DNA of 64,000 bases, taken from Macrostomum hystrix. Its lineage: Eukaryota > Animalia > Platyhelminthes. The stretch lies in assembly GCA_950097015.1 (NCBI GenBank), contig CATNEN010000027.1:744001-808000 (forward strand), in the 5' to 3' direction. A model generated the notes under the pieces. It saw only the letters and a list, made by a program, of their open reading frames with translations, was not told the DNA's origin and ran no database searches. Both the position numbers and the translations under genes were made by a program. Shown here piece after piece: positions 48,318 to 64,000 of the stretch. How positions within the stretch are numbered: position 1 is the stretch's first letter; each line of letters opens with the position of its first letter.

Positions 48318-48462
48318 GTGCGAATGCTGTGCTACTTTCAAATTCAAGCCTCTGAGGTCTTGCTGCTCTCCTGTTCCAACAAGATAGCTGAGAATTAGAG
48401 GCATTCGCACTCATTCCGCACACATCTAAAGCAGTTAGGCAAGGCGCTCTTTGTTTGTCTCA

Positions 48463-51400
48463 AGGGACACATCACACAGGGATACATCACACAGGGATAC
48501 ATCACACAGGGACACATCACACAGGGACACATCACACAGGGACACATCACACAGGGACACATCACACAGGGACACATCACACAGGGACACATCACACAGG
48601 GACACATCACACAGGGGCACATCACACTCGGACACATCACACAGGGACACATCACACAGGGATACATCACACAGGGACACATCACACAGGGACACATCAC
48701 ACAGGGACACATCACACAGGGACACATCACACAGGGACACATCACACAGGGATACATCACACAGGGACACATCACACAGGGACACATCACACAGGGACAC
48801 ATCACACAGGGACACATCACACAGGGACACATCACACAGGGATACATCACACAGGGACACATCACACAGGGACACATCACACAGGGACACATCACACAGG
48901 GACACATCACACAGGGACACATCACACAGGGACACATCACACAGGGACACATCACACAGGGACACATCACACAGGGACACATCACACAGGGACACATCAC
49001 ACAGGGACACATCACACAGGGACACATCACACAGGGACACATCACACAGGGATACATCACACAGGGACACATCACACAGGGATACATCACACAGGGATAC
49101 ATCACACAGGGATACATCACACAGGGACACATCACACAGGGACACATCACACAGGGACACATCACACAGGGATACATCACACAGGGACACATCACACAGG
49201 GACACATCACACAGGGATACATCACACAGGGACACATCACACAGGGACACATCACACAGGGACACATCACACAGGGACACATCACACAGGGATACATCAC
49301 ACAGGGACACATCACACAGGGATACATCACACAGGGATACATCACACAGGGATACATCACACAGGGACACATCACACAGGGATACATCACACAGGGATAC
49401 ATCACACAGGGATACATCACACAGGGACACATCACACAGGGACACATCACACAGGGACACATCACACAGGGACACATCACACAGGGACACATCACACAGG
49501 GACACATCACACAGGGATACATCACACAGGGACACATCACACAGGGATACATCACACAGGGATACATCACACAGGGATACATCACACAGGGATACATCAC
49601 ACAGGGACACATCACACAGGGATACATCACACAGGGACACATCACACAGGGACACATCACACAGGGACACATCACACAGGGACACATCACACAGGGATAC
49701 ATCACACAGGGACACATCACACAGGGACACATCACACAGGGACACATCACACAGGGATACATCACACAGGGACACATTACACAGGGACACATCACACAGG
49801 GACACATTACACAGGGACACATCACACAGGGACACATTACACAGGGACACATCACACAGGGACACAACACACAGGGACACAACACACAGGGACACATCAC
49901 ACAGGGACACAACTCACTCGGACACATCACACAGGGACACAACTCACTCGGACACATCACACAGGGACACATCACACAGGGACACAACACACATGGACAC
50001 AACACACTCGGACACATCACACAGGGACACAACACACATGGACACAACACACTCGGACACATCACACATGGACACAACTCACTCGGACACATCACACAGG
50101 GACACATCACACAGGGACACAACACACATGGACACAACACACTCGGACACATCACACAGGGACACATCACACAGGGACACATCACACAGGGACACATCAC
50201 ACAGGGACACATCACACAGGGATACATCACACAGGGACACATCACACAGGGATACATCACACAGGGACACATCACACAGGGATACATCACACAGGGACAC
50301 ATCACACAGGGACACATCACACAGGGATACATCACACAGGGACACATCACACAGGGACACATCACACAGGGACACATCACACAGGGACACATCACACAGG
50401 GACACAACACACATGGACACAACACACTCGGACACATCACACAGGGACACATCACACAGGGACACAACTCACTCGGACACATCACACAGGGACACATCAC
50501 ACAGGGACACATCACACAGGGACACATCACACAGGGACACATCACACAGGGATACATCACACAGGGACACATCACACAGGGACACATCACACAGGGATAC
50601 ATCACACAGGGACACATCACACAGGGACACATCACACAGGGACACATCACACAGGGATACATCACACAGGGACACATCACACAGGGACACATCACACAGG
50701 GACACATCACACAGGGACACATCACACAGGGATACATCACACAGGGATACATCACACAGGGACACATCACACAGGGACACATCACACAGGGACACATCAC
50801 ACAGGGACACATCACACAGGGACACATCACACAGGGATACATCACACAGGGACACATCACACAGGGATACATCACACAGGGACACATCACACAGGGACAC
50901 ATCACACAGGGATACATCACACAGGGACACATCACACAGGGACACATCACACAGGGACACATCACACAGGGACACATCACACAGGGACACAACACACATG
51001 GACACAACACACTCGGACACATCACACAGGGACACATCACACAGGGACACAACTCACTCGGACACATCACACAGGGACACATCACACAGGGATACATCAC
51101 ACAGGGACACATCACACAGGGACACATCACACAGGGATACATCACACAGGGACACATCACACAGGGACACATCACACAGGGACACATCACACAGGGATAC
51201 ATCACACAGGGACACATCACACAGGGACACATCACACAGGGACACATCACACAGGGACACATCACACAGGGATACATCACACAGGGATACATCACACAGG
51301 GACACATCACACAGGGACACATCACACAGGGACACATCACACAGGGACACATCACATAGGGACACATCACACAGGGACACATCACACAGGGGCACATCAC

Positions 51401-53065
51401 ACAGGGACACATCACACAGGGACACATCACACTCGGACACATCACACAGGGACAAATCACACAGGGACACATCACACAGGGACACATCACACAGGGACAC
51501 ATCACACAGGGGCACATCACACAGGGACACATCACACAGGGACACATCACACTCGGACACATCACACAGGGACACATCACACAGGGACACATCACACAGG
51601 GACACATCACACAGGGACACATCATACTGGGACACATCACACAGGGACACATCACACAGAGACGTATCACACAGGGACACATCACACAGGGACACAACTC
51701 ACTCGGACACATCACACAGGGACACATCACACAGGGACACAACACACAGGGACACATTACACAGGGACACATCACACAGGGACACATCACACAGGGACAC
51801 ATTACACAGGGACACATCACACAGGGACACATCACACAGGGACACATTACACAGGGACACATCACACAGGGACACATCACACAGGGACACATTACACAGG
51901 GACAAATCACACAGGGACACATTACACATGGACACATCACACAGGGACACATCACACAGGGACACATCACACAGGGACACATCACACAGGGACACATCAC
52001 ACAGGGACACATCACACAGGGACACATCACACAGGGACACATCACACAGGGACAAATCACACAGGGACACATCACACAGGGACACATCACACAGGGACAC
52101 ATCACACAGGGGCACATCACACAGGGACACATCACACAGGGACACATCACACTCGGACACATCACACAGGGACACATCACACAGGGACACATCACACAGG
52201 GACACATCACACAGGGACACATCATACTGGGACACATCACACAGGGACACATCACACAGAGACGTATCACACAGGGACACATCACACAGGGACACAACAC
52301 ACAGGGACACAACACACAGGGACACATCATACTGGGACACATCACACTGGGACACATCACACAGAGACGTATCACACAGGGACACATCACACAGGGACAC
52401 ATCACACAGGGACACAACACACAGGGACACAACTCACTCGGACACATCACACAGGGACACATCACACAGGGACACAACACACAGGGACACATTACACAGG
52501 GACACATCACACTCGGACACATCACACAGGGACACATTACACAGGGACACATCACACAGGGACACAACACACAGGGACACAACACACTCAGACACATCAC
52601 ACAGGGACACAACTCACTCGGACACATCACACAGGGACACATCACACAGGGACACAACACACTCGGACACATCACACAGGGACACATCACACAGGGACAC
52701 ATCACACTCGGACACATCACACAGGGACACATCTATCAAGGACACATCACACAGGGACACATCACACAGGGACACAACACACTCGGACACATCACACAGG
52801 GACACAACACACAGGGACACATCACACAGGGACACATCACACAGGGACACATCACACAGGGACACATCACACAGGGACACATCACACAGGGACACATCAC
52901 ACAGGGGCACAACACACTCGGACACATCACACAGGGACACATCACACAGGGACACAACTCACAGGGACACAACACACTCGGACACATCACACAGGGACAC
53001 ATCACACAGGGACACAACACACTCGGACACATCACACAGGGACACATCTATCAAGGACACATCAC
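48463..53065. repeat. 15-bp minisatellite (GACACATCACACAGG)n filling the DEG/ENaC intron
   Basis: Direct reading; about 305 units in strict register. Confidence 0.98.
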
Positions 53066-53139
53066 AGCGGGGTACACTGGGGCAAGTTATCCAAAAGCGC
53101 TCATGGAATAACGGCCAGGAATTGGTCTATCTCGAGCAG

Positions 53140-54087
53140 GTCCACGAGAACAACACCTACCCGGATCCGACGGCCAAAGGCATTCACATTGAGCCCGGCA
53201 AGCTGGTGGAGATCAACTACCGGCACGTGCGCTGGCACGAGGCTGACACTCCGCGTGACGTCTGCCTGCATCCAGAGGCCGTTCGCTCGCGCCGGGTCAC
53301 CGACCTCGGCCAGGACTTCGCCTACTCGGCCGACGGCTGCGTCAAGGCGGCCATCGGGCGCCGGGTTCTTAGGCAGTGCGGCTGCCACTACGCCGAGAAT
53401 CTGCGCGAGACGCCGCCAAACGCGACCCATCCGTACTGCGGCGACATGCGGCTGCGCTTCAGCGCCATCCATCGCAACTTGCTCTGCCTGAGCCAAATCA
53501 ACTTCACGGCGCTGAAAATTGAGCTCAGCGAAAATGAGTGCGCCAGTCCGTGCAGCTACTCAAAGTTTGAGACCTTCACTTCGCAGACAGTGTGGAAGGC
53601 CACAGACTGGCAGCTCTACTGGCTGCTCAAGCAGTCACAGAGCCTCGCCCGCCTACGGGCTAGTCAGCGCCTATCAGAGGGTCCAGAGCGAGAGGAGCTG
53701 GTGCGCACGGCGAAGGACGACTTGAAGCGGCTGCTAAGCCTGCCGCGCCTGTCCAACCTGTCCGCCAGGGACGTCAGGCTGGACTTCAACTCGCACAGCA
53801 ATGAGTTCGCCTACGTTACGGTGCGCAGGCAGACCTGCAATACCATGCGCAAGTCCGAGGCTCAGTCGCTAAACCTGAGCGCCCTGATGAGCCAACTCGG
53901 CGGCCTGTGCAGCCTGTTCCTCGGTCTCACCTGCGCCGTCGCGGTGGAGCTGATCGAGGTAGTGCTAATGCGACGCTGGCGCCAACAGCAGGAGGCGGCA
54001 GCTGCAGTCACTGCTGGCGATGCTGCCGCTGCCATTGAGATGAAGAGGGAGTGCAGTAATGGGGACCACGCCACGGAGAGGCTGTAG
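53140..54087 (+). CDS. DEG/ENaC channel subunit, exon 2 (Cys-rich domain, TM2)
   Basis: GAGCAG|VHENNTYPDP...GIHIEPG, Cys-rich thumb (C..C.C...C..C...C..PC), TM2 LMSQLGGLCSLFLGLTCAVAVELIE; stop TAG ends at 54087. Confidence 0.92.
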   Translation, partial: VHENNTYPDPTAKGIHIEPGKLVEINYRHVRWHEADTPRDVCLHPEAVRSRRVTDLGQDFAYSADGCVKAAIGRRVLRQCGCHYAENLRETPPNATHPYCGDMRLRFSAIHRNLLCLSQINFTALKIELSENECASPCSYSKFETFTSQTVWKATDWQLYWLLKQSQSLARLRASQRLSEGPEREELVRTAKDDLKRLLSLPRLSNLSARDVRLDFNSHSNEFAYVTVRRQTCNTMRKSEAQSLNLSALMSQLGGLCSLFLGLTCAVAVELIEVVLMRRWRQQQEAAAAVTAGDAAAAIEMKRECSNGDHATERL

Positions 54088-55076: not shown

Positions 55077-55479
55077 TCAGTTCGGAATGTACTGCTGCTC
55101 CAGCGTCTTGTCGATGTCCTCGAACTCGTTGCGCAGCGTGGCGAAGGTCGGCCTGTCGTCCGGGTTCTGGTTCCAGCAGGCCATCATGTACTGCTGGTGA
55201 ATCCGCACCGCTGTCTCCTCGTCTGCCCGGGACATGCCGGTTGTTCTGGGGTAGGGCAGCCGGTTCTTCGGGTTCTTCACAAACTGCATCACCTCGCGGT
55301 TGGACATGCCGACGTAGATGGAGCCGCCGAGGGTGATGATCTCGTACAGCAGGATGCCGTAGGACCAGACATCCGACTTGGTGGTGAAGCGGTTCTCGTG
55401 CATGGCCTCCGGTGCTGTCCACTTCACCGGGAACTTGCCCAGCGTCTCCGCCTGATATATTTCATCTTCTTGAACCACT
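55077..55479 (-). CDS. Src-family kinase, exon 4
   Basis: Activation loop EDEIYQ, FPVKWTAPE, SDVWSYGILL, CW...PDDRPTF, and C-terminal QQYIPN with the Csk-type regulatory Tyr. Confidence 0.95.
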
Positions 55480-55611: not shown

Positions 55612-56020
55612 CTGGCCAAGCCGAAATCAGCGACCTTTACAAAGTTGTCTTTGCCAACCAGAACATTGGCGGCCCGCAGATCTCTGTGGACAAACTTCTT
55701 TTCCTCCAGATAGGCCATTCCGTCCGCAATCTGGTAGGCGATGTCCAGTAGAATGGTCATCGTCAGCTTGTTGACGCCGGAGCTGGACTTTCTCAGGTAG
55801 TCCAGCAGGGCTCCGTTCTCCATGAACTCGGTGATGATGTAGATCTGGTCGGATGGCTCGCGAAGCTCAGTGCAAACGCCAAGAATGTTGACAATCTTCG
55901 GGTGCGACAGTTTATGCATGATCTTAGCCTCGTCCAGGAACTTGTCCTGCGACATGGCCGTATCTGGCTTCAGCGTCTTGATGGCCACATCCAGGATGCC
56001 GTTCCACTTGGCTAGCCAAA
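55612..56020 (-). CDS. Src-family kinase, exon 3
   Basis: TTTCAG|VWLAKWNGILDVAIKTLK...HRDLRAANVLV...KVADFGLAR; HRDLRAAN is the Src-family catalytic loop. Confidence 0.95.
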
Positions 56021-56102: not shown

Positions 56103-56235
56103 CCTCTCCGAAGCTTCCAGCGCCGAGTTTGCGCACCATGCTCAGCGTCGACCTGGGGACTTCGATTTCCTTGAACGGCACTGGACCAGGCGGGTCTGAC
56201 GGACAGGGGTCGGAAAGGGGCGAGCACAGACCGCC
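56103..56235 (-). CDS. Src-family kinase, 3-prime part of exon 2 (SH2 end, linker, Gly-rich loop)
   Basis: GGLCSPLSDPCP...EVPRSTLSMVRKLGAGSFGE; donor G|GTATAC. Begins with the duplicated target site. Confidence 0.9.
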
Positions 56236-56353
56236 TTGACTTACTTGACTTAGCGGCAGGGGGCCTCCATGACGGACGCAGCGAGGAGGCGGCTGTTGCC
56301 GCCCATATCGCTAACCCCTGGCAGCCAGACGGCCTCCAGCGAGGCGGTGCCGC

Positions 56354-59300
56354 TCAGGGTGGTCCGTCGGTCGGTTCCGCCGCGCGATCTTCCTCGCCAT
56401 AGGCTGGGAAGAAATCAGCTCGGCCGGTATCCCGGAGGAAGTGGGCGAGCTGAGGGATGTTCTCGGGCGAGCAGGCTTCGGCAAGAGTCGGTGCCGGCCC
56501 GAGGTGTTTTAGCCTAGCCCGGGTGAAGGCCGGGCAGTGGCAAATGAAATGCTCGGCGTTTTCACGGCCGGAGCAGCAGAAAGGACACGTTTCCTCAGGC
56601 ACGTGGCCTTGGAGGTAGCGGTGTCTGGTGAAGCAGCCATGTCCCGAAAGGGCCATGGTGACTGCTCTCAGGTCTCTGCGGTTTAGCCTGAGTAAGGCCT
56701 TACGCAGGTTACTAGAGGGGGTTGGCACCGCAGCCCTGGACTGGCGACAGTTCAGGGTGCTGGACCACCTCCTCCGGTGCTGGGTCTCCATCCAGTGGTT
56801 GATGCTGGAGTTGACAACGGAGGCGGGGATCGGGGATTCCGGGCCCGGGCCCATCAGGGAGCTGGCTGCTCCAGCCTTTGCAAGCTCGTCCGCCATCTCA
56901 TTCCCTGTGAGCCCGGCGTGCCCAGGGATCCACATCAGCTCCACCTTGTTAGACTGCGCCAAACCGTTTAACTGGGTGTTGCAGTCCAAGGTGGTTCTGG
57001 AGCGAGAGGTGCAGCGACTGAGGGCCTTAAGGGCTGCTTGACTGTCGGAGTGAAAAAAGATCCTCCGACCAGCCAGCTGCCTCTGGCGCAGCTCAGCCGC
57101 ACAGAAGCTGATGGCGAGCATTTCGTTTTGGAAAACGCTTGAGCTCTTGCCACAGTGTTGGGGAGTGGGTCCAGAGGACCTCGCCACCCGAGGCGACGCA
57201 CACCCCGAATCCCGATTTACCGTTCATCAGGGAGCCGTCAGTGTAACAGTGGACTGCGGGGTCATCCCAGCAGTCCTTTACCTCATTACGAGGGAAGATG
57301 CTGACTTTGTACCTGTGGCTCCGGAGTAAAGTGGCCGGGGCCCCGTCCGAAAGGATGGTGAGCCCTCCGCACTCGCCCAGAGTTTTCAGGCAGAGGTCAG
57401 AGTGGGGCAGAAGGGAGCGCTTCGAGAAGGCTCGCGAATTCTGGAAGGATACACCCGCATCAAGGAGACGACGGGTGGACTTTGCCGCTTCCCCCTTAAC
57501 AAAAATGTCAATGGGTGTAGCGTTGAGGAAAGCGTTCATGCCTTCAAAGGGAGTGGAGGGTGGGGCGCCCAGCGTCATGCGACAGGCTCTGCCCTGCACC
57601 CTATAAAGCGCCTCCAGGTTTTTCTGGATGCTCATGGCACTGGCCCAGATGAGGCCAGCGTAAGCGACTGACGGTCTAATGATCGCCGTGTAAATCCACC
57701 AAAGGTTTTTGGGGGTTAGCCCCCAAGTGGTGCCCACGGCTCGCCTGACTTGCGCCAGAATGGCCAGGGCCCTCTTGGCCTTTGTGGTAATGTGCGGGGT
57801 CCAGTTAAGCCTATGGTCTAGCAGGATACCAAGGCACCGGACCTGCTTTTCCATGGCAATATTCTTGCCATAGAGAGTCAGAGGCTCAATGGTCCAGCGC
57901 AGCCTGCTGGTAAACATAACCGCAACGGTCTTGGACTCAGAGAGTCGGAGCCCGCATTGGTCCGCCCAGCGCACCGCCCTGTTGATAAAGCCCTGAATGA
58001 GGTCCCTGGTGGTTTCCGCCGAGGGGCCCGCGCAGATGGCGGTCACATCGTCGGCATATCCCACCTTCAGGACTGGGTCAGGCCGAGTGCTTTTTAGCAG
58101 CTCATCCATGACGAGATTCCACAGCAGTGGGGTGAGGACGCCACCTTGGGGCCCTCCTTTTAGGACAGGTGCCGAGAGCACCCTGCCTTCGAGGTGGGCC
58201 ACCACGTGGCGATTCCGGATCATGTACATGACCCAACGGACGAGGTGGGGGTGAGTGGCCCTGGAAACCAGGGCCTTCTCAAAGGCTTCGAAAATAACGT
58301 TATCGAAGGCCCCCTCAATATCAAGGAAAACAGCCAGGGCAAAACCGCTGCCCAGCACTGCCTTCTCGAGAGTCTCCACAATGCAGTGGAGGGCGCTCTC
58401 CGTGGACCGGCCCGCCCGAAAGGCGTGCTGGTTTGGTGAGAGCGGGGCCCGCCCTAGCTCTACAGTAAGAAGGCGCCAGAGCACCAGTCTTTCCATGAGC
58501 TTGAGGCAGGTGGAAGTCAAGCTTATCGGGCGATAAGACTTGACCGAGCGATAGTCGCCTTTGGCGGGCTTCGGGATGAAGACGACCCGGGCTTCATGCC
58601 ACCGCGCTGGTACGTAGCCCAGCACGATGCAGGCCCGTAGAAGTCTGCAGAGGAGATGGAGGAAGCGGCCATTTTTAACCGCTTCATGCAGAAAGGCCGG
58701 ATATATACCATCTGGCCCAGGTGCTTTAAAAGGATTGAATGACTTAGCCGCGCGAACGATGCGGTCATTCGTAACGAGTGACTGAGCCAGGCCCTGACCT
58801 CCACGCGAGTGGTCGTCTGGGCCGAAGTGCGCCGGTACACTCGGGAAGAAATGCCCTAGCATAAGCTCGAGCGTTTCCTCCGGGCGCTCAGTGATCGAGC
58901 CGTCCGGCTTTTTAATCGATGAGAGCTTGGAGAAGCGGTCGTTGGTGAGCGCCTTTACCACGCGGGCCGTGGGCCGCGAGCCCTCAAGCCCTTCGCAGTA
59001 TTGTCGCCACTTGTTCGCTTTTGCCCTTCTGACCCGGCCCTTAAACTCATGGATGGCGCGAGTATAGGCCTCTTTGTCATCAGGGTCGTGCGAGGTTTTC
59101 AGCTTCCTCTGGAGAGCCTTAGCTCGGCGTCTTAGGATTCCGAGCTCGGGGTTCCACCAGGGGGCCGATTTTTTGCCTTTGTAGGCTTTGAGCGGGCAAG
59201 CCATTTCGTAGGCCTCTGTGATGGCGCCGCCCAGCAGGGCAGCCACTCCATCCAGGTCCTGCGTGGTTTCCATGGCCATGGAGGGGTCAGAATCCCGAAG

Positions 59301-60059
59301 GCCCTCATGCAGCTTTTGGCTGAACGCGGGCCAGTCGGTATTTCTGACATTACGCCTCCAAATAGGCTTTTGCTTCTTATCGGGGGTGCCGATGTTGAAA
59401 CGGATGAAACGGTGGTCCGAGAGCGAGCTTTCGGTCTCCCACACCTCCCACCCCAGCACCCTTGGGAGGATGCCGGGTGAGGCCAGGGTGACGTCAAGCA
59501 CCTCAGCCCACCGCCCATTGTCGAAAGTGGGCGTGTTGCCCACATTGCAAAAGTTTAGAGGCGTGCCGCTGACGAAGGCCAGGAGCTCTTCGCCGCGGTC
59601 ATTGATTTTTGAGCTACCCCAGTGGGTGTGATGCGAGTTTACATCTCCCGCGAGGAGCAGCTCGAAGTTTCGTGCCCTGGCGAATTCACAGAGGGCGACG
59701 AGGGTATCGCTAACCACGGGGGCGTCGCCTGCCAGGTAGGCGGATGCCACGAGGGTCAACTTGTTAGGCACAATGTGTGCAGATTGGATGACGCAGATGT
59801 CCCCGTTAGAGAGATCGGGTCTCATCCACGCATTTAAGGCTTTTGCGGCATAGATCAGTGATCTAGGGCGGACAGAGTCTGCCATGCAGAAGCAGTCATA
59901 GCCAGCAGGAATGTTGCTTGGCTTGTTCTTTGATAGCCAGGGCTCCTGCACAAGTACAAGGCCCGGCATCATGCGCTCTGTCGTGCGCATCAGATTGACT
60001 GATGCTGCCACGCAGTGCTGGGTGTTAACTTGCAGACATGATATTCCGGGGATCATCAT
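56354..60059 (-). CDS. Retrotransposon ORF2: AP endonuclease, reverse transcriptase, RNase H, CCHC-like finger; one +1 frameshift near 57160
   Basis: APE motifs [20 protein letters not shown]; RT motifs [11 protein letters not shown] and YADD; RNase H motifs [23 protein letters not shown]...GNEMAD; finger CPFC...HFICHC. Split between track ORFs 57093..60059 and 56354..57187. Confidence 0.95.
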
Positions 60060-60071
60060 GCAGGCAGAGGT

Positions 60072-61632
60072 CTACTTGGAGGGGGACCCAGCCAGAAGGC
60101 GGTCCTCCTCCTCCGGGTCGATGTCGGTAGCCATGGGCTCCTCCGTGCCCAGGCCCCGAGCCGGAGACGGGAACTCGACGGCGTCAGCCGCCCAGTCCCC
60201 GCCCCCGGCCCCGAGCCCAGGCCCAGAGTCGCCCTCAACTGGAGCCGACACCGCTCCCTGGGCCGTGGGAGGGGCGCTCGAAGGGCCCTGCTCGATGGAG
60301 CTGGGCACCTCTGAGGCCTCCCCCGTAGCCCTTGGTTGCGGCGCCTGCCCCGGTGGGCCACCGCGCATCTCAGCGCGCAGCTGGGCCATCTTGGCGGTTC
60401 GCACCACCTCGGAGGCCCGCTGGAGAAGGCCCCGGCGCTTTGTGACACGCGCGGGGCGACGCTCAGAGCCGCCAGCGATGGCACGCTCTGGCCTTTTTTG
60501 GCGGGACGACTGGGCCCTGCCCCCAGTCCCAGCCTTGGGGTCCGAGGACCCTTCATTGGCCGGTACGGTGGTGGGCCCGGTCTGACCTCGGGTTTTATCC
60601 GCCTCGAAGGCGAAGATTTTGGTCTTCCACAGACCAATGCAAATGTTGGCGCCATCTGGGTAGCGGCGTGTCCATTGCTCGGACAGGCCCAGAATGGCGG
60701 TGAAACCGGTGCCGTCGGGGCGCAGGATCGTGCGGTGCACGATCAGGCCCGCTGTCGGCAGCTCCCGGTTCATCGCGATGAGGCCCCTGCGGAGGTCCTC
60801 AGCGCTGGTGACGACACTTTTCGCCGGGACGAAGATACGGTGTCGCTTGGTCTTTGGTGGCTCGTTCTCCCGTAGGAACTCGAGGCCAGCCGCCCAGCTC
60901 TGCGTGGGCAGCAACTCGAGGAGCCCGCCGCCCCGATTCCGCATCGCCGGGCCAGACGACGAAGCACGATTCCCTGGTAGCGCTTGCGCCGACCGCCAGG
61001 GGCTCGCCCTTCAGTTGAAGTTGCCACAACATAGCATCTATGTTGCGGCAAATGTCGCTGAGCTGTTCGCTGCTCAGCCTTTTCCCGTCTCTGCCGGTGA
61101 TGATGACGGCAGGTTGCCTACGTGCGATGGCGGCGTAGGTAGCTTGTGGTCCCGGGCCCTGTCCGGTGGCGTCCCCACCCTCGGGATCTGCGTCGGCGGT
61201 GGGCACAGGGCCCTCCGCCTCCGCTTCTCCTTCGGGCCGGGCAGCCGTCCGGATGGGCGCCGGGCCCTCCTTGGCCCGCGACCCTGGCCTCGGGGCGTCG
61301 TGGGCTCCGCCCCGTGCAGGAGCCTGGGCAGGAGGCACAAGGCCCCCCGCCCCAGCCCCCGCCCTAGGCAGAGCCCCTTCGGCCCCTCTGGCCTGGGCCT
61401 GGTCCTTGGTCAATGGAGCCGACGTGCCGTGGGCCAGCATGCGCCTACGGCGTTTTGCCGCTCCAGAGGTGGTGGAGCGCTTAGCGCCCCGGTCATCGCG
61501 CGAGTTGGGCAGCGCGGCATTTGTGGCGGTCGCGGGGCCAGCTAGCCCGGGCGCCGCAGCGTGTATGGCCTCAGGCACCATGGTGTCCTCGGCCGGAGCA
61601 GTTGAAGGGCTAGAAGCCATTGAAAGCTGCAA
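60072..61632 (-). CDS. Retrotransposon ORF1 (gag-like, DUF4780-like core); one +1 frameshift near 60925-60934
   Basis: Lies directly upstream of ORF2. TYAAIAR...VIITG and KRHRIFVP...L...N..L patterns resemble ORF1 of LOA/R1-type elements (recalled similarity, not searched). Confidence 0.7.
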
Positions 61633-62287
61633 TGAAGAGAGGGGCTTCCTGTAGACACAGGCAGGAATAACCCGCTCAGCCGCGATCCCAAAACTGAGCG
61701 GGGGCAGCCAAAAAAGACAAGTTACAACCCGGGGTGGGATGCCAGGACCACCGGGAGGAACCGTAAGAGACCAGACTACTCCCTGGCCAAGCGTCCATCA
61801 GCACGGTCAACACTGGGACATTGGAGGGTGCCATTGAGCCGGCGCCGAGGCCTGCGGGCTGGCCGCAAACCCTGTTAAGGTCAAAGGGTGACACCTGTCC
61901 CTCAGGGCCGTAGCCAGAGGTACCTGATCACGCACAGGTGCACGAAAATTGCGGACAAGCCACATACCCTGTTAAGGTCAAAGGGTGACACCTTTCCCTC
62001 CAGCCGGGGCTAGAGGTACCCAGTTTGGCCGGAGGCCCTGGATGGGTCATCCAGCGCTGTTGCCCATTCTGTCCGGCTGCCCTAGGGTCAGCCTTGAACA
62101 CTCGCGGGACGTGTACCCATGGGTCAGCTGACGGGACAGCGTTGGAGGGATTCCTGCACCCGAAGGTACAGGTCTCCTTCCTGCCAGGCCTGCTCAAAAA
62201 ACGGCTGCAGGTGTGAGGCATCGCAGACCAAAGCCCGTGGGCCTGGACTGACTCATACCTCACAGGCACTGTGTCCCGCCGGTGCGA

Positions 62288-62305
62288 GCGAGCACAGACC
62301 GCCAC
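62288..62305 (-). CDS. Src-family kinase, 5-prime part of exon 2 (cut by the retrotransposon)
   Basis: Follows a 72-nt intron with acceptor CCCATCCAG|. Reads (S)GGLCS, then enters the element. Confidence 0.85.
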
Positions 62306-62377
62306 CTGGATGGGCGAAAGCAGTGAGCAGACTCGGGTTTCTGTTATGTCATTTCAATAACTCTTTCTCAAACTTAC

Positions 62378-62954
62378 TCTTGTACTCGTCAATCAACTTC
62401 TGCACAGTGGGATAGGTCTTCGATTTGTTGATGAAGAACACAGTCTCATCAGCTGAGTTCTTAATCTGGTAGTGCTTCACCAGGAAATTGTTCTCGCATC
62501 GGCGGTCGGGAGTTCGAACGCTGAGCGCCAATCGAGCCAGGCCAGCGCTTTGCTTGGCGCAAGGCCGGATGATGTAGGTCCCAGCTGGCAGACCGGCTCG
62601 CAGCAGCATCCGGTTGGCGTCCATCCGGTTGCAGTCCATCCAGCCGCTCAGCTGGCAGGGCATGCCGTTGTACTTGCTGATGTAGTTGTTCGGCACCAGA
62701 CCGCTGCGATTCGTCTCGAGATTCCGCGCCTTCCACCACTGGCTGGTCTGGCACTGCTCCGGCGTGAACTCCAGCTCGATCATGTCACCCTTGCGGATTG
62801 ACAGCTCGTCTTGCTGGGAGGCGACGAAATTGTGAAGGGCCATGTAGGCATTGCGATCATTTTTGCTGGCCGGAACTGAATCAGCGCCTGCCTGGCGATT
62901 TGAGCTGCCTCTCGATGAGGACTTCGGGTTGCACTTTGAGAAGGCTGAGCCCAT
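62378..62954 (-). CDS. Src-family tyrosine kinase, exon 1 (SH4 myristoylation motif, SH3, most of SH2)
   Basis: MGSAFSKC N-terminus; SH3 ALHNF...ELSIRKGD...WW...GLVPNNY; SH2 GTYIIRPC...VKHYQI; donor A|GTAAGT. Uninterrupted model = 507 aa. Confidence 0.93.
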
Positions 62955-63298
62955 TCTTGAAGCACTGCAGCTTCGCTGAATTCTTTAATTTTCCTTGCTT
63001 CGAAAAATTTAAAAAAGTACGCGAAGCCGTGTGTGTTTGTGAGGCTGCGAGTGTCGGCCTGTGCCACCGCGGACCCTGTCTTGTGCAGCTGCAGAGTGTT
63101 TATGCCCAGCCTGACCCTCCATGTAGCTCAACTTTGTCAATAATCTATCGGAAGAATCTCTCGAGCTAAACACTTGGCAGTGACGCAGGCCGGAACTGCA
63201 CCTTCATGAAGGCGCGAATGGCGCAGGCCAGGTAGAAGAATTATAATTTTTATCGAACGGATCTTGCAAATGCGCACACAGCTGTACTGTACAACACT

Positions 63299-64000
63299 AT
63301 CTAGCTACTGTGAATATCTAGCTACTGGGAAAATCTAGCTACTGGGAAAATCTAGCTACTGGGAATATGTAGCTACTGGGAATATGTAGCTACAGGGAAT
63401 ATCTAGCTACTGTGAATATCTAGCTACTGAGAAAATCCAGCTACTGGGAATATCTAGCTACTGGGAAAATCTAGCTACTGGGAATATCTAGCTACTGGGA
63501 ATATCTAGCTACTGGGAATATCTAGCTACTGGGAAAATCTAGCTACTGGGAATATCTAGCTACTGGGAATATGTAGCTACTGGGAATATGTAGCTACAGG
63601 GAATATCTAGCTACTGGGAATATCTAGCTACTGAGAAAATCCAGCTACTGGGAATATCTAGCTACTGGGAAAATCTAGCTACTGGGAATATCTAGCTACT
63701 GGGAATCTCTAGCTACTGGGAATATCTAGCTACTGGGAATATGTAGCTACTGGGAATATGTAGCTACTGGGAATATCTAGCTACTGGGAATATCTAGCTA
63801 CTGGGAATATGTAGCTACTGGGAATATGTAGCTACTGGGAATATCTAGCTACTGGGAATATCTAGCTACTGGGAATATCTAGCTACTGGGAATATCTAGC
63901 TACTGGGAATATCTAGCTACTGGGAATATCTAGCTACTGGGAATATGTAGCTACTGGGAATATCTAGCTACTGGGAATATCTAGCTACTGGGAATATCTA
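63299..64000. repeat. 17-bp satellite (TAGCTACTGGGAATATC)n, second array (runs off the window)
   Basis: Same unit and orientation as 39393-44661. Confidence 0.97.

Follow-up and report, generated by a model that had tools for sequence, protein, structure and literature searches.

A Src-type kinase gene split within its second exon

The stretch of DNA analyzed here, referred to as the window, comprises 64,000 nucleotides of the Macrostomum hystrix genome assembly GCA_950097015.1 (G000:C27:744001-808000; contig CATNEN010000027.1). It carries a minus-strand gene for a tyrosine kinase with SH3 and SH2 domains, which hosts a full-length long interspersed nuclear element (LINE) within its coding exon 2. 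The interrupted gene is designated copy A. A second, uninterrupted gene of the same kind lies further along the contig and is designated copy B.

Copy A has four exons, all on the minus strand, which were compared with Pfam and the Protein Data Bank (PDB) one exon at a time. Exon 1 (62378-62954; 577 nt) opens with the ATG at 62954 and encodes the start MGSAFSK, an SH3 domain and a complete SH2 domain (Pfam SH3_1 at residues 39-88 and SH2 at residues 108-191). It is followed by a phase 1 intron of 72 nt (62306-62377; gtaagt...ccag). Exon 2 now lies in two parts on either side of the element. Its upstream part (62288-62305) consists of GT and a 16-nt repeat, and its downstream part (56103-56219; 117 nt) encodes the linker between the SH2 and kinase domains together with the glycine-rich loop GAGSFGE. 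Both intron 1 and this downstream part are also found in copy B. Exon 3 (55612-56020; 409 nt) encodes the kinase N-lobe through the DFG motif (Pfam PK_Tyr_Ser-Thr, E 4.9e-43), and exon 4 (55077-55479; 403 nt including the stop codon) encodes the C-lobe and a C-terminal tail with a tyrosine (Pfam, E 2.2e-29). The domain order is accordingly SH3, SH2 and tyrosine kinase, as read from the Pfam matches on exons 1, 3 and 4 separately.

The boundaries of exon 2 (acceptor between 62306 and 62305, donor between 56103 and 56102) identify the two flanks of the element as halves of one exon. With the element and one copy of the repeat taken out, exon 2 measures 18 + 117 = 135 nt, and the four exons add up to 577 + 135 + 409 + 403 = 1524 nt, or 507 codons and a stop. 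An earlier sequence-only reading of this DNA had stated that removal of the element restores a 135-nt exon and a 507-residue kinase with intact catalytic motifs. The exon arithmetic agrees with this, and the motifs GAGSFGE, VAIK, HRDLRAAN, DFG and TAPE are all readable. The same reading had placed the interrupted codons, GGLCS, at the end of the SH2 domain. They are better placed just past it, at the start of the SH2-kinase linker, as the Pfam match to SH2 ends at residue 191.

Several features suggest a relationship of the gene to the Src family. The best relatives of exon 1 among solved structures in the PDB are Hck, Lck and Fyn (E about 1e-20), with Abl at 6e-9, and the best match of exon 3 among cytoplasmic kinases, as well as its best full-length relative, is Src (pairwise search with the exon alone). 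In common with Src, Fyn, Lck and Hck, the flatworm gene has an MGxxxS start, the SH3-SH2-kinase order, and tyrosines in both the activation loop (EDEIYQAE) and the C-terminal tail (EQQYIPN-stop), the latter two being encoded by exon 4. It differs from them in its short SH4/unique region and in a tail that reads YIPN rather than YQP. By direct reading, MGSAFSK fits the myristoylation signal Met-Gly-x-x-x-Ser/Thr, and we infer from this motif that the product of copy A is myristoylated.

An exact 16-nt repeat borders the element on both sides. Within the window there are exactly two occurrences of the 16-mer GGCGGTCTGTGCTCGC (minus strand), one at 56220-56235 and the other at 62288-62303, against an expectation of 0 by chance (100 shuffles). 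By direct reading, these are respectively the 3' and 5' copies of a target-site duplication. A repeat search of the element and its flanks returned this pair as the sole flanking direct repeat, with no long terminal repeats (LTRs) and no terminal inverted repeats.

The LINE and its family

The element is a non-LTR retrotransposon of 6052 bp (56236-62287, minus strand; GC content 62%) inserted in sense orientation relative to the gene. Its 5' untranslated region (61621-62287; 667 nt) includes a consensus-like splice donor, GAG followed by GTATGAGT, between 62259 and 62258. Within this region, at 61853-62000, there are also two 51-nt direct repeats, 88% identical and 97 nt apart, which may be part of an internal promoter. 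Open reading frame (ORF) 1 spans 60072-61620 and ORF2 spans 56354-60059. The remainder (56236-56353) is a 3' untranslated region and a tail, the latter of variable length among copies and closed by short GTCAA/GTAA repeats instead of a poly(A) stretch.

The 220-Mb assembly of 42 contigs was searched for relatives of the element. This returned 920 candidates at first look, from which 25 copies, including the one in the kinase gene, were compared over 5785 aligned positions. Full-length copies number at least 21 in the genome; these and additional truncated copies are about 100% identical. The 25 compared copies carry a mean of 6.8 differences per 5785 positions (about 0.12%), and four family copies are truncated at position 131 or 217. 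Both ORFs are open (515 and 1234 residues) in 22 of the 24 other copies. On this ground, the family is almost certainly active now.

ORF2 encodes an apurinic endonuclease (APE), a reverse transcriptase (RT) and an RNase H. The part that is open in the kinase-gene copy (57093-60059, minus strand; 988 residues) matches Pfam Exo_endo_phos_2 (E 1.4e-17) and RVT_1 (E 1.6e-28), as does an intact sister copy. Pfam RNase_H was located downstream of the RT, at residues 935-1064 of an intact 1234-residue sister ORF2. The nearest named relatives of ORF2 in a word search of a protein collection are gene models of Macrostomum lignano, with 56-73% identity over parts of the protein; the top-ranking ORF2 match in that collection is 62% identical, and none reached 90% identity. 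The 515-residue ORF1 had no Pfam match. In an intact family member (L002:2168-3715, plus strand), it has low-complexity ends rich in Ala, Pro, Gly and Arg around a central region that looks folded.

The element resembles the RNase H-bearing APE LINEs (I, LOA, R1, Tad and Ingi) in its separate ORF1 and in the APE-RT-RNase H order of ORF2. Likewise, it shares with them flanking duplications of variable length and a 3' end of short tandem repeats instead of poly(A). A point of difference is that its ORF1 matches no Pfam family.

Three changes are private to the kinase-gene copy: an inserted G at 60926 (GG to GGG), an inserted C at 57163 (CCC to CCCC) and one substitution at 59550. The first splits ORF1 at about codon 232, and the second splits ORF2 at about codon 966, inside the RNase H domain. 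As assembled, this copy is unable to encode its own proteins. The sequence-only reading had described a full-length LINE of 6052 bp. Its length and completeness stand, given that the ends match those of 20 other full-length copies and that the APE, RT and RNase H domains are present. It requires the qualification that the copy is not coding-competent, owing to the two private +1 frameshifts.

Comparison with these 20 other full-length copies, which have identical ends, also bears on how the junctions are read. All 20 have GC directly before TCGCACC, and in nearly all of them this GC lies outside the duplication. Their tails are made up of GTCAA/GTAA units in numbers that vary from copy to copy, and many carry a G or GT after the last unit. 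The flanking duplications that were read at other copies measure 11-14 bp and differ in sequence at each site. At the kinase gene, the GC that closes the upstream 16-mer can belong to the element, and the G that opens the downstream 16-mer to its tail. For this reason, the true duplication is estimated at 13-16 bp, close to the usual 11-14 bp of the family. The description of a perfect 16-bp target-site duplication is correct in that an exact 16-nt repeat lies on both sides, but its length has to be given as this range, as the end bases may be the element's own. A TCGC micro-duplication had also been proposed at the 5' junction. This is ruled out, as TCGC is part of the element's own 5' end (GC-TCGCACC) in 20/20 other full-length copies. 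What was taken for a micro-duplication is simply the regular beginning of the element, placed against a target whose last bases are GCTCGC. Microhomology of this kind is common where the 5' ends of LINEs join their targets.

Three further copies lie on another contig (C25:8808362-8870137; L034, L035 and L036). They are all truncated at position 131, have identical flanks and are spaced 25-31 kb apart. They represent one insertion amplified by a tandem segmental repeat, and tandem duplication of 20-30-kb blocks thus recurs in this genome.

An intact tandem paralogue

Each flank of the insertion was searched against the whole assembly. Apart from itself, either flank has a single near-identical match, and both of these matches are on the contig of copy A. 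They lie directly side by side with one 16-mer in common, so that the site reads ...ccag followed by GTGGCGGTCTGTGCTCGCCCCTTTCC..., with exon 2 uninterrupted. This is copy B (C27:820627-822433), which lies 15,479 bp from copy A (ATG to ATG). Its splice sites match those of copy A, it shows no change that would disable it, and its product has 506 residues. The sequence-only reading had assumed only one gene or allele at the locus, which cannot be maintained with an intact paralogue carrying the empty site 15.5 kb away. It had also suggested a search for an intact homeolog; that search, as run here, found one in the form of a tandem duplicate. As copy B is intact and on the same contig, the null allele that had been proposed would be buffered.

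The two copies are 99.3-99.6% identical in unique sequence. The upstream region, exon 1 and intron 1, together 1011 bp, show 4 substitutions, and over the next 2220 bp there are 8 mismatches and 4 gaps. Within coding sequence, exon 1 has two differences, both non-synonymous, exon 3 has none and exon 4 has one, which is synonymous. The remaining coding differences form a tight cluster in the linker. Variants private to copy A are C at 62848, C at 62837 and a version of the linker with an extra 3 nt at 56184-56186.

The linker cluster is a separate observation. Of the approximately 16 differences between the copies, 4 are packed into a 16-bp segment of the SH2-kinase linker that begins 22 nt and ends 37 nt downstream of where the element inserted (window 56183-56198 compared with L023:3736-3748, minus strand). 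Two of them are C/T changes, one is a 3-nt indel and the fourth is another substitution, and the peptide reads PSDPPGPVP in copy A and PLDLPVVP in copy B. The cluster may reflect one complex mutation, fast evolution of the linker or DNA repair close to where the element integrated.

When 104 kb were compared with themselves, a tandem duplication with the layout L-X-X'-R was evident. The duplicated segments, of about 18-24 kb, are window 39377-63298 and C27:807298-822777 (L021, L023). Each unit contains a 17-bp satellite, unique DNA, a 15-bp array, a DEG/ENaC-like gene and the Src-type gene. The arrays differ greatly in copy number between the two units: 310 and 455 for the 17-bp satellite, 307 and 17 for the 15-bp AGGGACACATCACAC array, and 252 and 86 for an AGTG microsatellite. 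The duplication junction lies at 63298-64000. Here, the upstream region of copy A ends 344 bp before the ATG and meets 17-bp satellite, which runs 7.7 kb to the unit of copy B. Upstream of copy B, the sequence continues as unique DNA of no relation to this, and copy B is not followed by satellite. Copy B is thereby the one that keeps its native promoter context, and copy A the one with its upstream region cut to 344 bp.

The element is missing from copy B. In addition, the element in copy A has one private substitution in 5785 bp, compared with a divergence of about 0.4% between the two gene copies. Taken together, these two observations place the insertion after the duplication.

Origin and consequences of the insertion

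It is very probable that the locus as a whole reflects a recent insertion of an active LINE, by target-primed reverse transcription, into one of two tandem Src-type genes. A full-length APE-RT-RNase H copy would have entered exon 2 of copy A in sense orientation. The staggered cuts of the element's endonuclease fell 13-16 bp from each other, within codons that immediately succeed the SH2 domain, and they gave rise to the flanking duplication. The 5' end of the element was joined at the GC microhomology. That the insertion is very recent, as claimed earlier, is borne out by the undecayed state of the other kinase exons of copy A and by the youth of the LINE family, with its differences of about 0.12%. 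An artefact of misassembly through a collapsed repeat was considered and is effectively excluded: the exon continues across the element, the duplication is of near-typical length for the family and the paralogue contains the empty site.

The predicted consequences for copy A follow from its small introns. These are 72-132 nt long, which makes intron definition likely, and the native acceptor of exon 2 is intact. With intron definition, the element would stay within exon 2 of the copy A transcript. Translation of exon 2 into the element gives the peptide GGLCSLAPAGHSACEV and reaches its first in-frame stop, TGA, at 62253-62255 on the minus strand (62255-62253 in reading direction). The total product is 209 residues, in agreement with the position and length given in the sequence-only reading. 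The reading frame would end 17 codons past the start of the exon, upstream of two further introns. The outcome would be an unstable transcript prone to nonsense-mediated decay, or a small amount of a 209-residue SH3-SH2 stub, and kinase function would come from copy B. Two other possible fates of the transcript were considered. Early polyadenylation at a canonical signal inside the element is not predicted, as its sense strand has no AATAAA and only one ATTAAA, located mid-element. Rescue through the element-internal donor between 62259 and 62258 fails because this donor is out of frame with every acceptor in the tail.

The insertion thus reads as a clean but ordinary knockout of one gene copy. 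It is probably harmless, as an intact and near-identical tandem copy lies 15.5 kb away.

Some points weigh against this account or restrict it. What is said here on heterozygosity, fixation and transcript fate is predicted from the assembled sequence. The order in which duplication preceded insertion depends on the absence of the element from copy B and on very small counts. In addition, the two private frameshifts are in short homopolymer runs, and instead of being true mutations they could have arisen as errors in the assembly consensus. Short relatives or truncated products were also sought by a word search with the exon 1 peptide; it was blank, though uninformative, as proteins of that length from this species are not in the collection.

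Copies A and B could instead be two haplotypes of one heterozygous locus laid end to end, in which case the Src-type gene would be single-copy and the insertion polymorphic. The identity of 99.3-99.6% is within the range of allelic divergence, and the copies differ mainly in the lengths of satellite arrays, as alleles often do. Likewise, the 7.7-kb satellite between them is a place prone to assembler error, and the two homopolymer indels private to the element would suit a locus of lower read support. The arrangement of the contig nevertheless argues against such a join. The L-X-X'-R layout has a novel junction at 63298, where the upstream region of copy A passes straight into satellite, whereas that of copy B passes into unrelated unique DNA with no satellite after it. 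A false join by overlap would need shared sequence at both ends, which is not present, and the three C25 copies with identical flanks provide a precedent for LINE-carrying tandem segmental repeats in the same genome. We therefore regard the haplotype explanation as improbable.

The remaining alternatives concern what copy A does now. Its truncated form might be an expressed and selected myristoylated adaptor or inhibitor, comparable to SLAP or to a dominant-negative Src fragment. The 209-residue product keeps the myristoylation-type motif and complete SH3 and SH2 domains, the intact paralogue leaves copy A free to change, and both exon 1 differences are non-synonymous. Two substitutions cannot show selection, however, and the blank word search with exon 1 adds nothing in either direction. 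The insertion is also too young for selection to have acted, with kinase exons that are still undecayed, and a stop upstream of two further introns is the classic configuration for nonsense-mediated decay. An adaptor function is consequently unlikely. Splicing might alternatively rescue copy A, with the element spliced out in a 6.1-kb intron that would extend from the donor of exon 1 to an AG created where the tail meets the duplication, or with exon 2 skipped. An acceptor at ...TCAAG/GC is in frame at the cost of one Gly, one earlier AG in the tail is in frame too, and exon 2 is symmetric (135 nt, phase 1-1), such that its skipping preserves the frame. With introns so short, the untouched native acceptor 72 nt from the donor should nevertheless win over a tail whose pyrimidine tract is weak and whose four AGs lie close together. 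Skipping of exon 2 would remove the linker and the glycine-rich ATP-binding loop, leaving a product that is not an active kinase, and the donor within the element offers no in-frame route. Rescue by splicing is very unlikely on these grounds.

On the preferred interpretation of a recent LINE insertion into one of two tandem genes, the case adds no new principle and exemplifies a familiar process in an ordinary way. The insertion of LINEs into exons is a textbook form of insertional mutagenesis, and de novo LINE-1 insertions into coding exons are known, for example in exon 14 of human factor VIII. As in those cases, a full-length or near-full-length APE-type LINE has entered a coding exon by target-primed reverse transcription, with duplication of about a dozen bases and inactivation of the gene copy. 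Unlike LINE-1, the flatworm element belongs to another clade, carries an RNase H and ends in GTCAA/GTAA repeats rather than poly(A). The host also differs: it is a flatworm, and the gene hit has an intact tandem twin, for which reason no loss of function is expected.

The locus is of value in several other respects. It puts on record a LINE family of a Macrostomum genome that has intact ORFs and is active at present. The exact pair of filled and empty sites within one contig fixes the true termini of the element and the length of the duplication. It also shows a young tandem gene duplicate that lost its coding integrity almost immediately. A polymorphic insertion, if this is one, would be convenient for following current retrotransposition in laboratory lines.

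The predicted product has known parallels. The adaptors SLAP and SLAP2 are encoded by conserved genes of old age and have a C-terminal tail that binds Cbl, and experimental SH3-SH2 fragments of Src with dominant-negative action are known. The 209-residue product would similarly be a myristoylated SH3-SH2 protein without a kinase domain. In contrast to SLAP, the truncation here is an accident a few mutations old, and the predicted product has an 11-residue tail derived from the element. Should the adaptor explanation be true, copy A would represent gene birth by domain loss near its origin, yielding an inhibitor or adaptor of its intact twin and illustrating a natural route to SLAP-like regulators.

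A further open frame in the window is convergent with copy A. It spans 1878 codons (48451-54087, plus strand), most of which is the 15-bp array read as DTSHR repeats. This array may be exonic or lie upstream of the true start. The C-terminal part of the frame, as read from its translation, resembles a DEG/ENaC-type channel.

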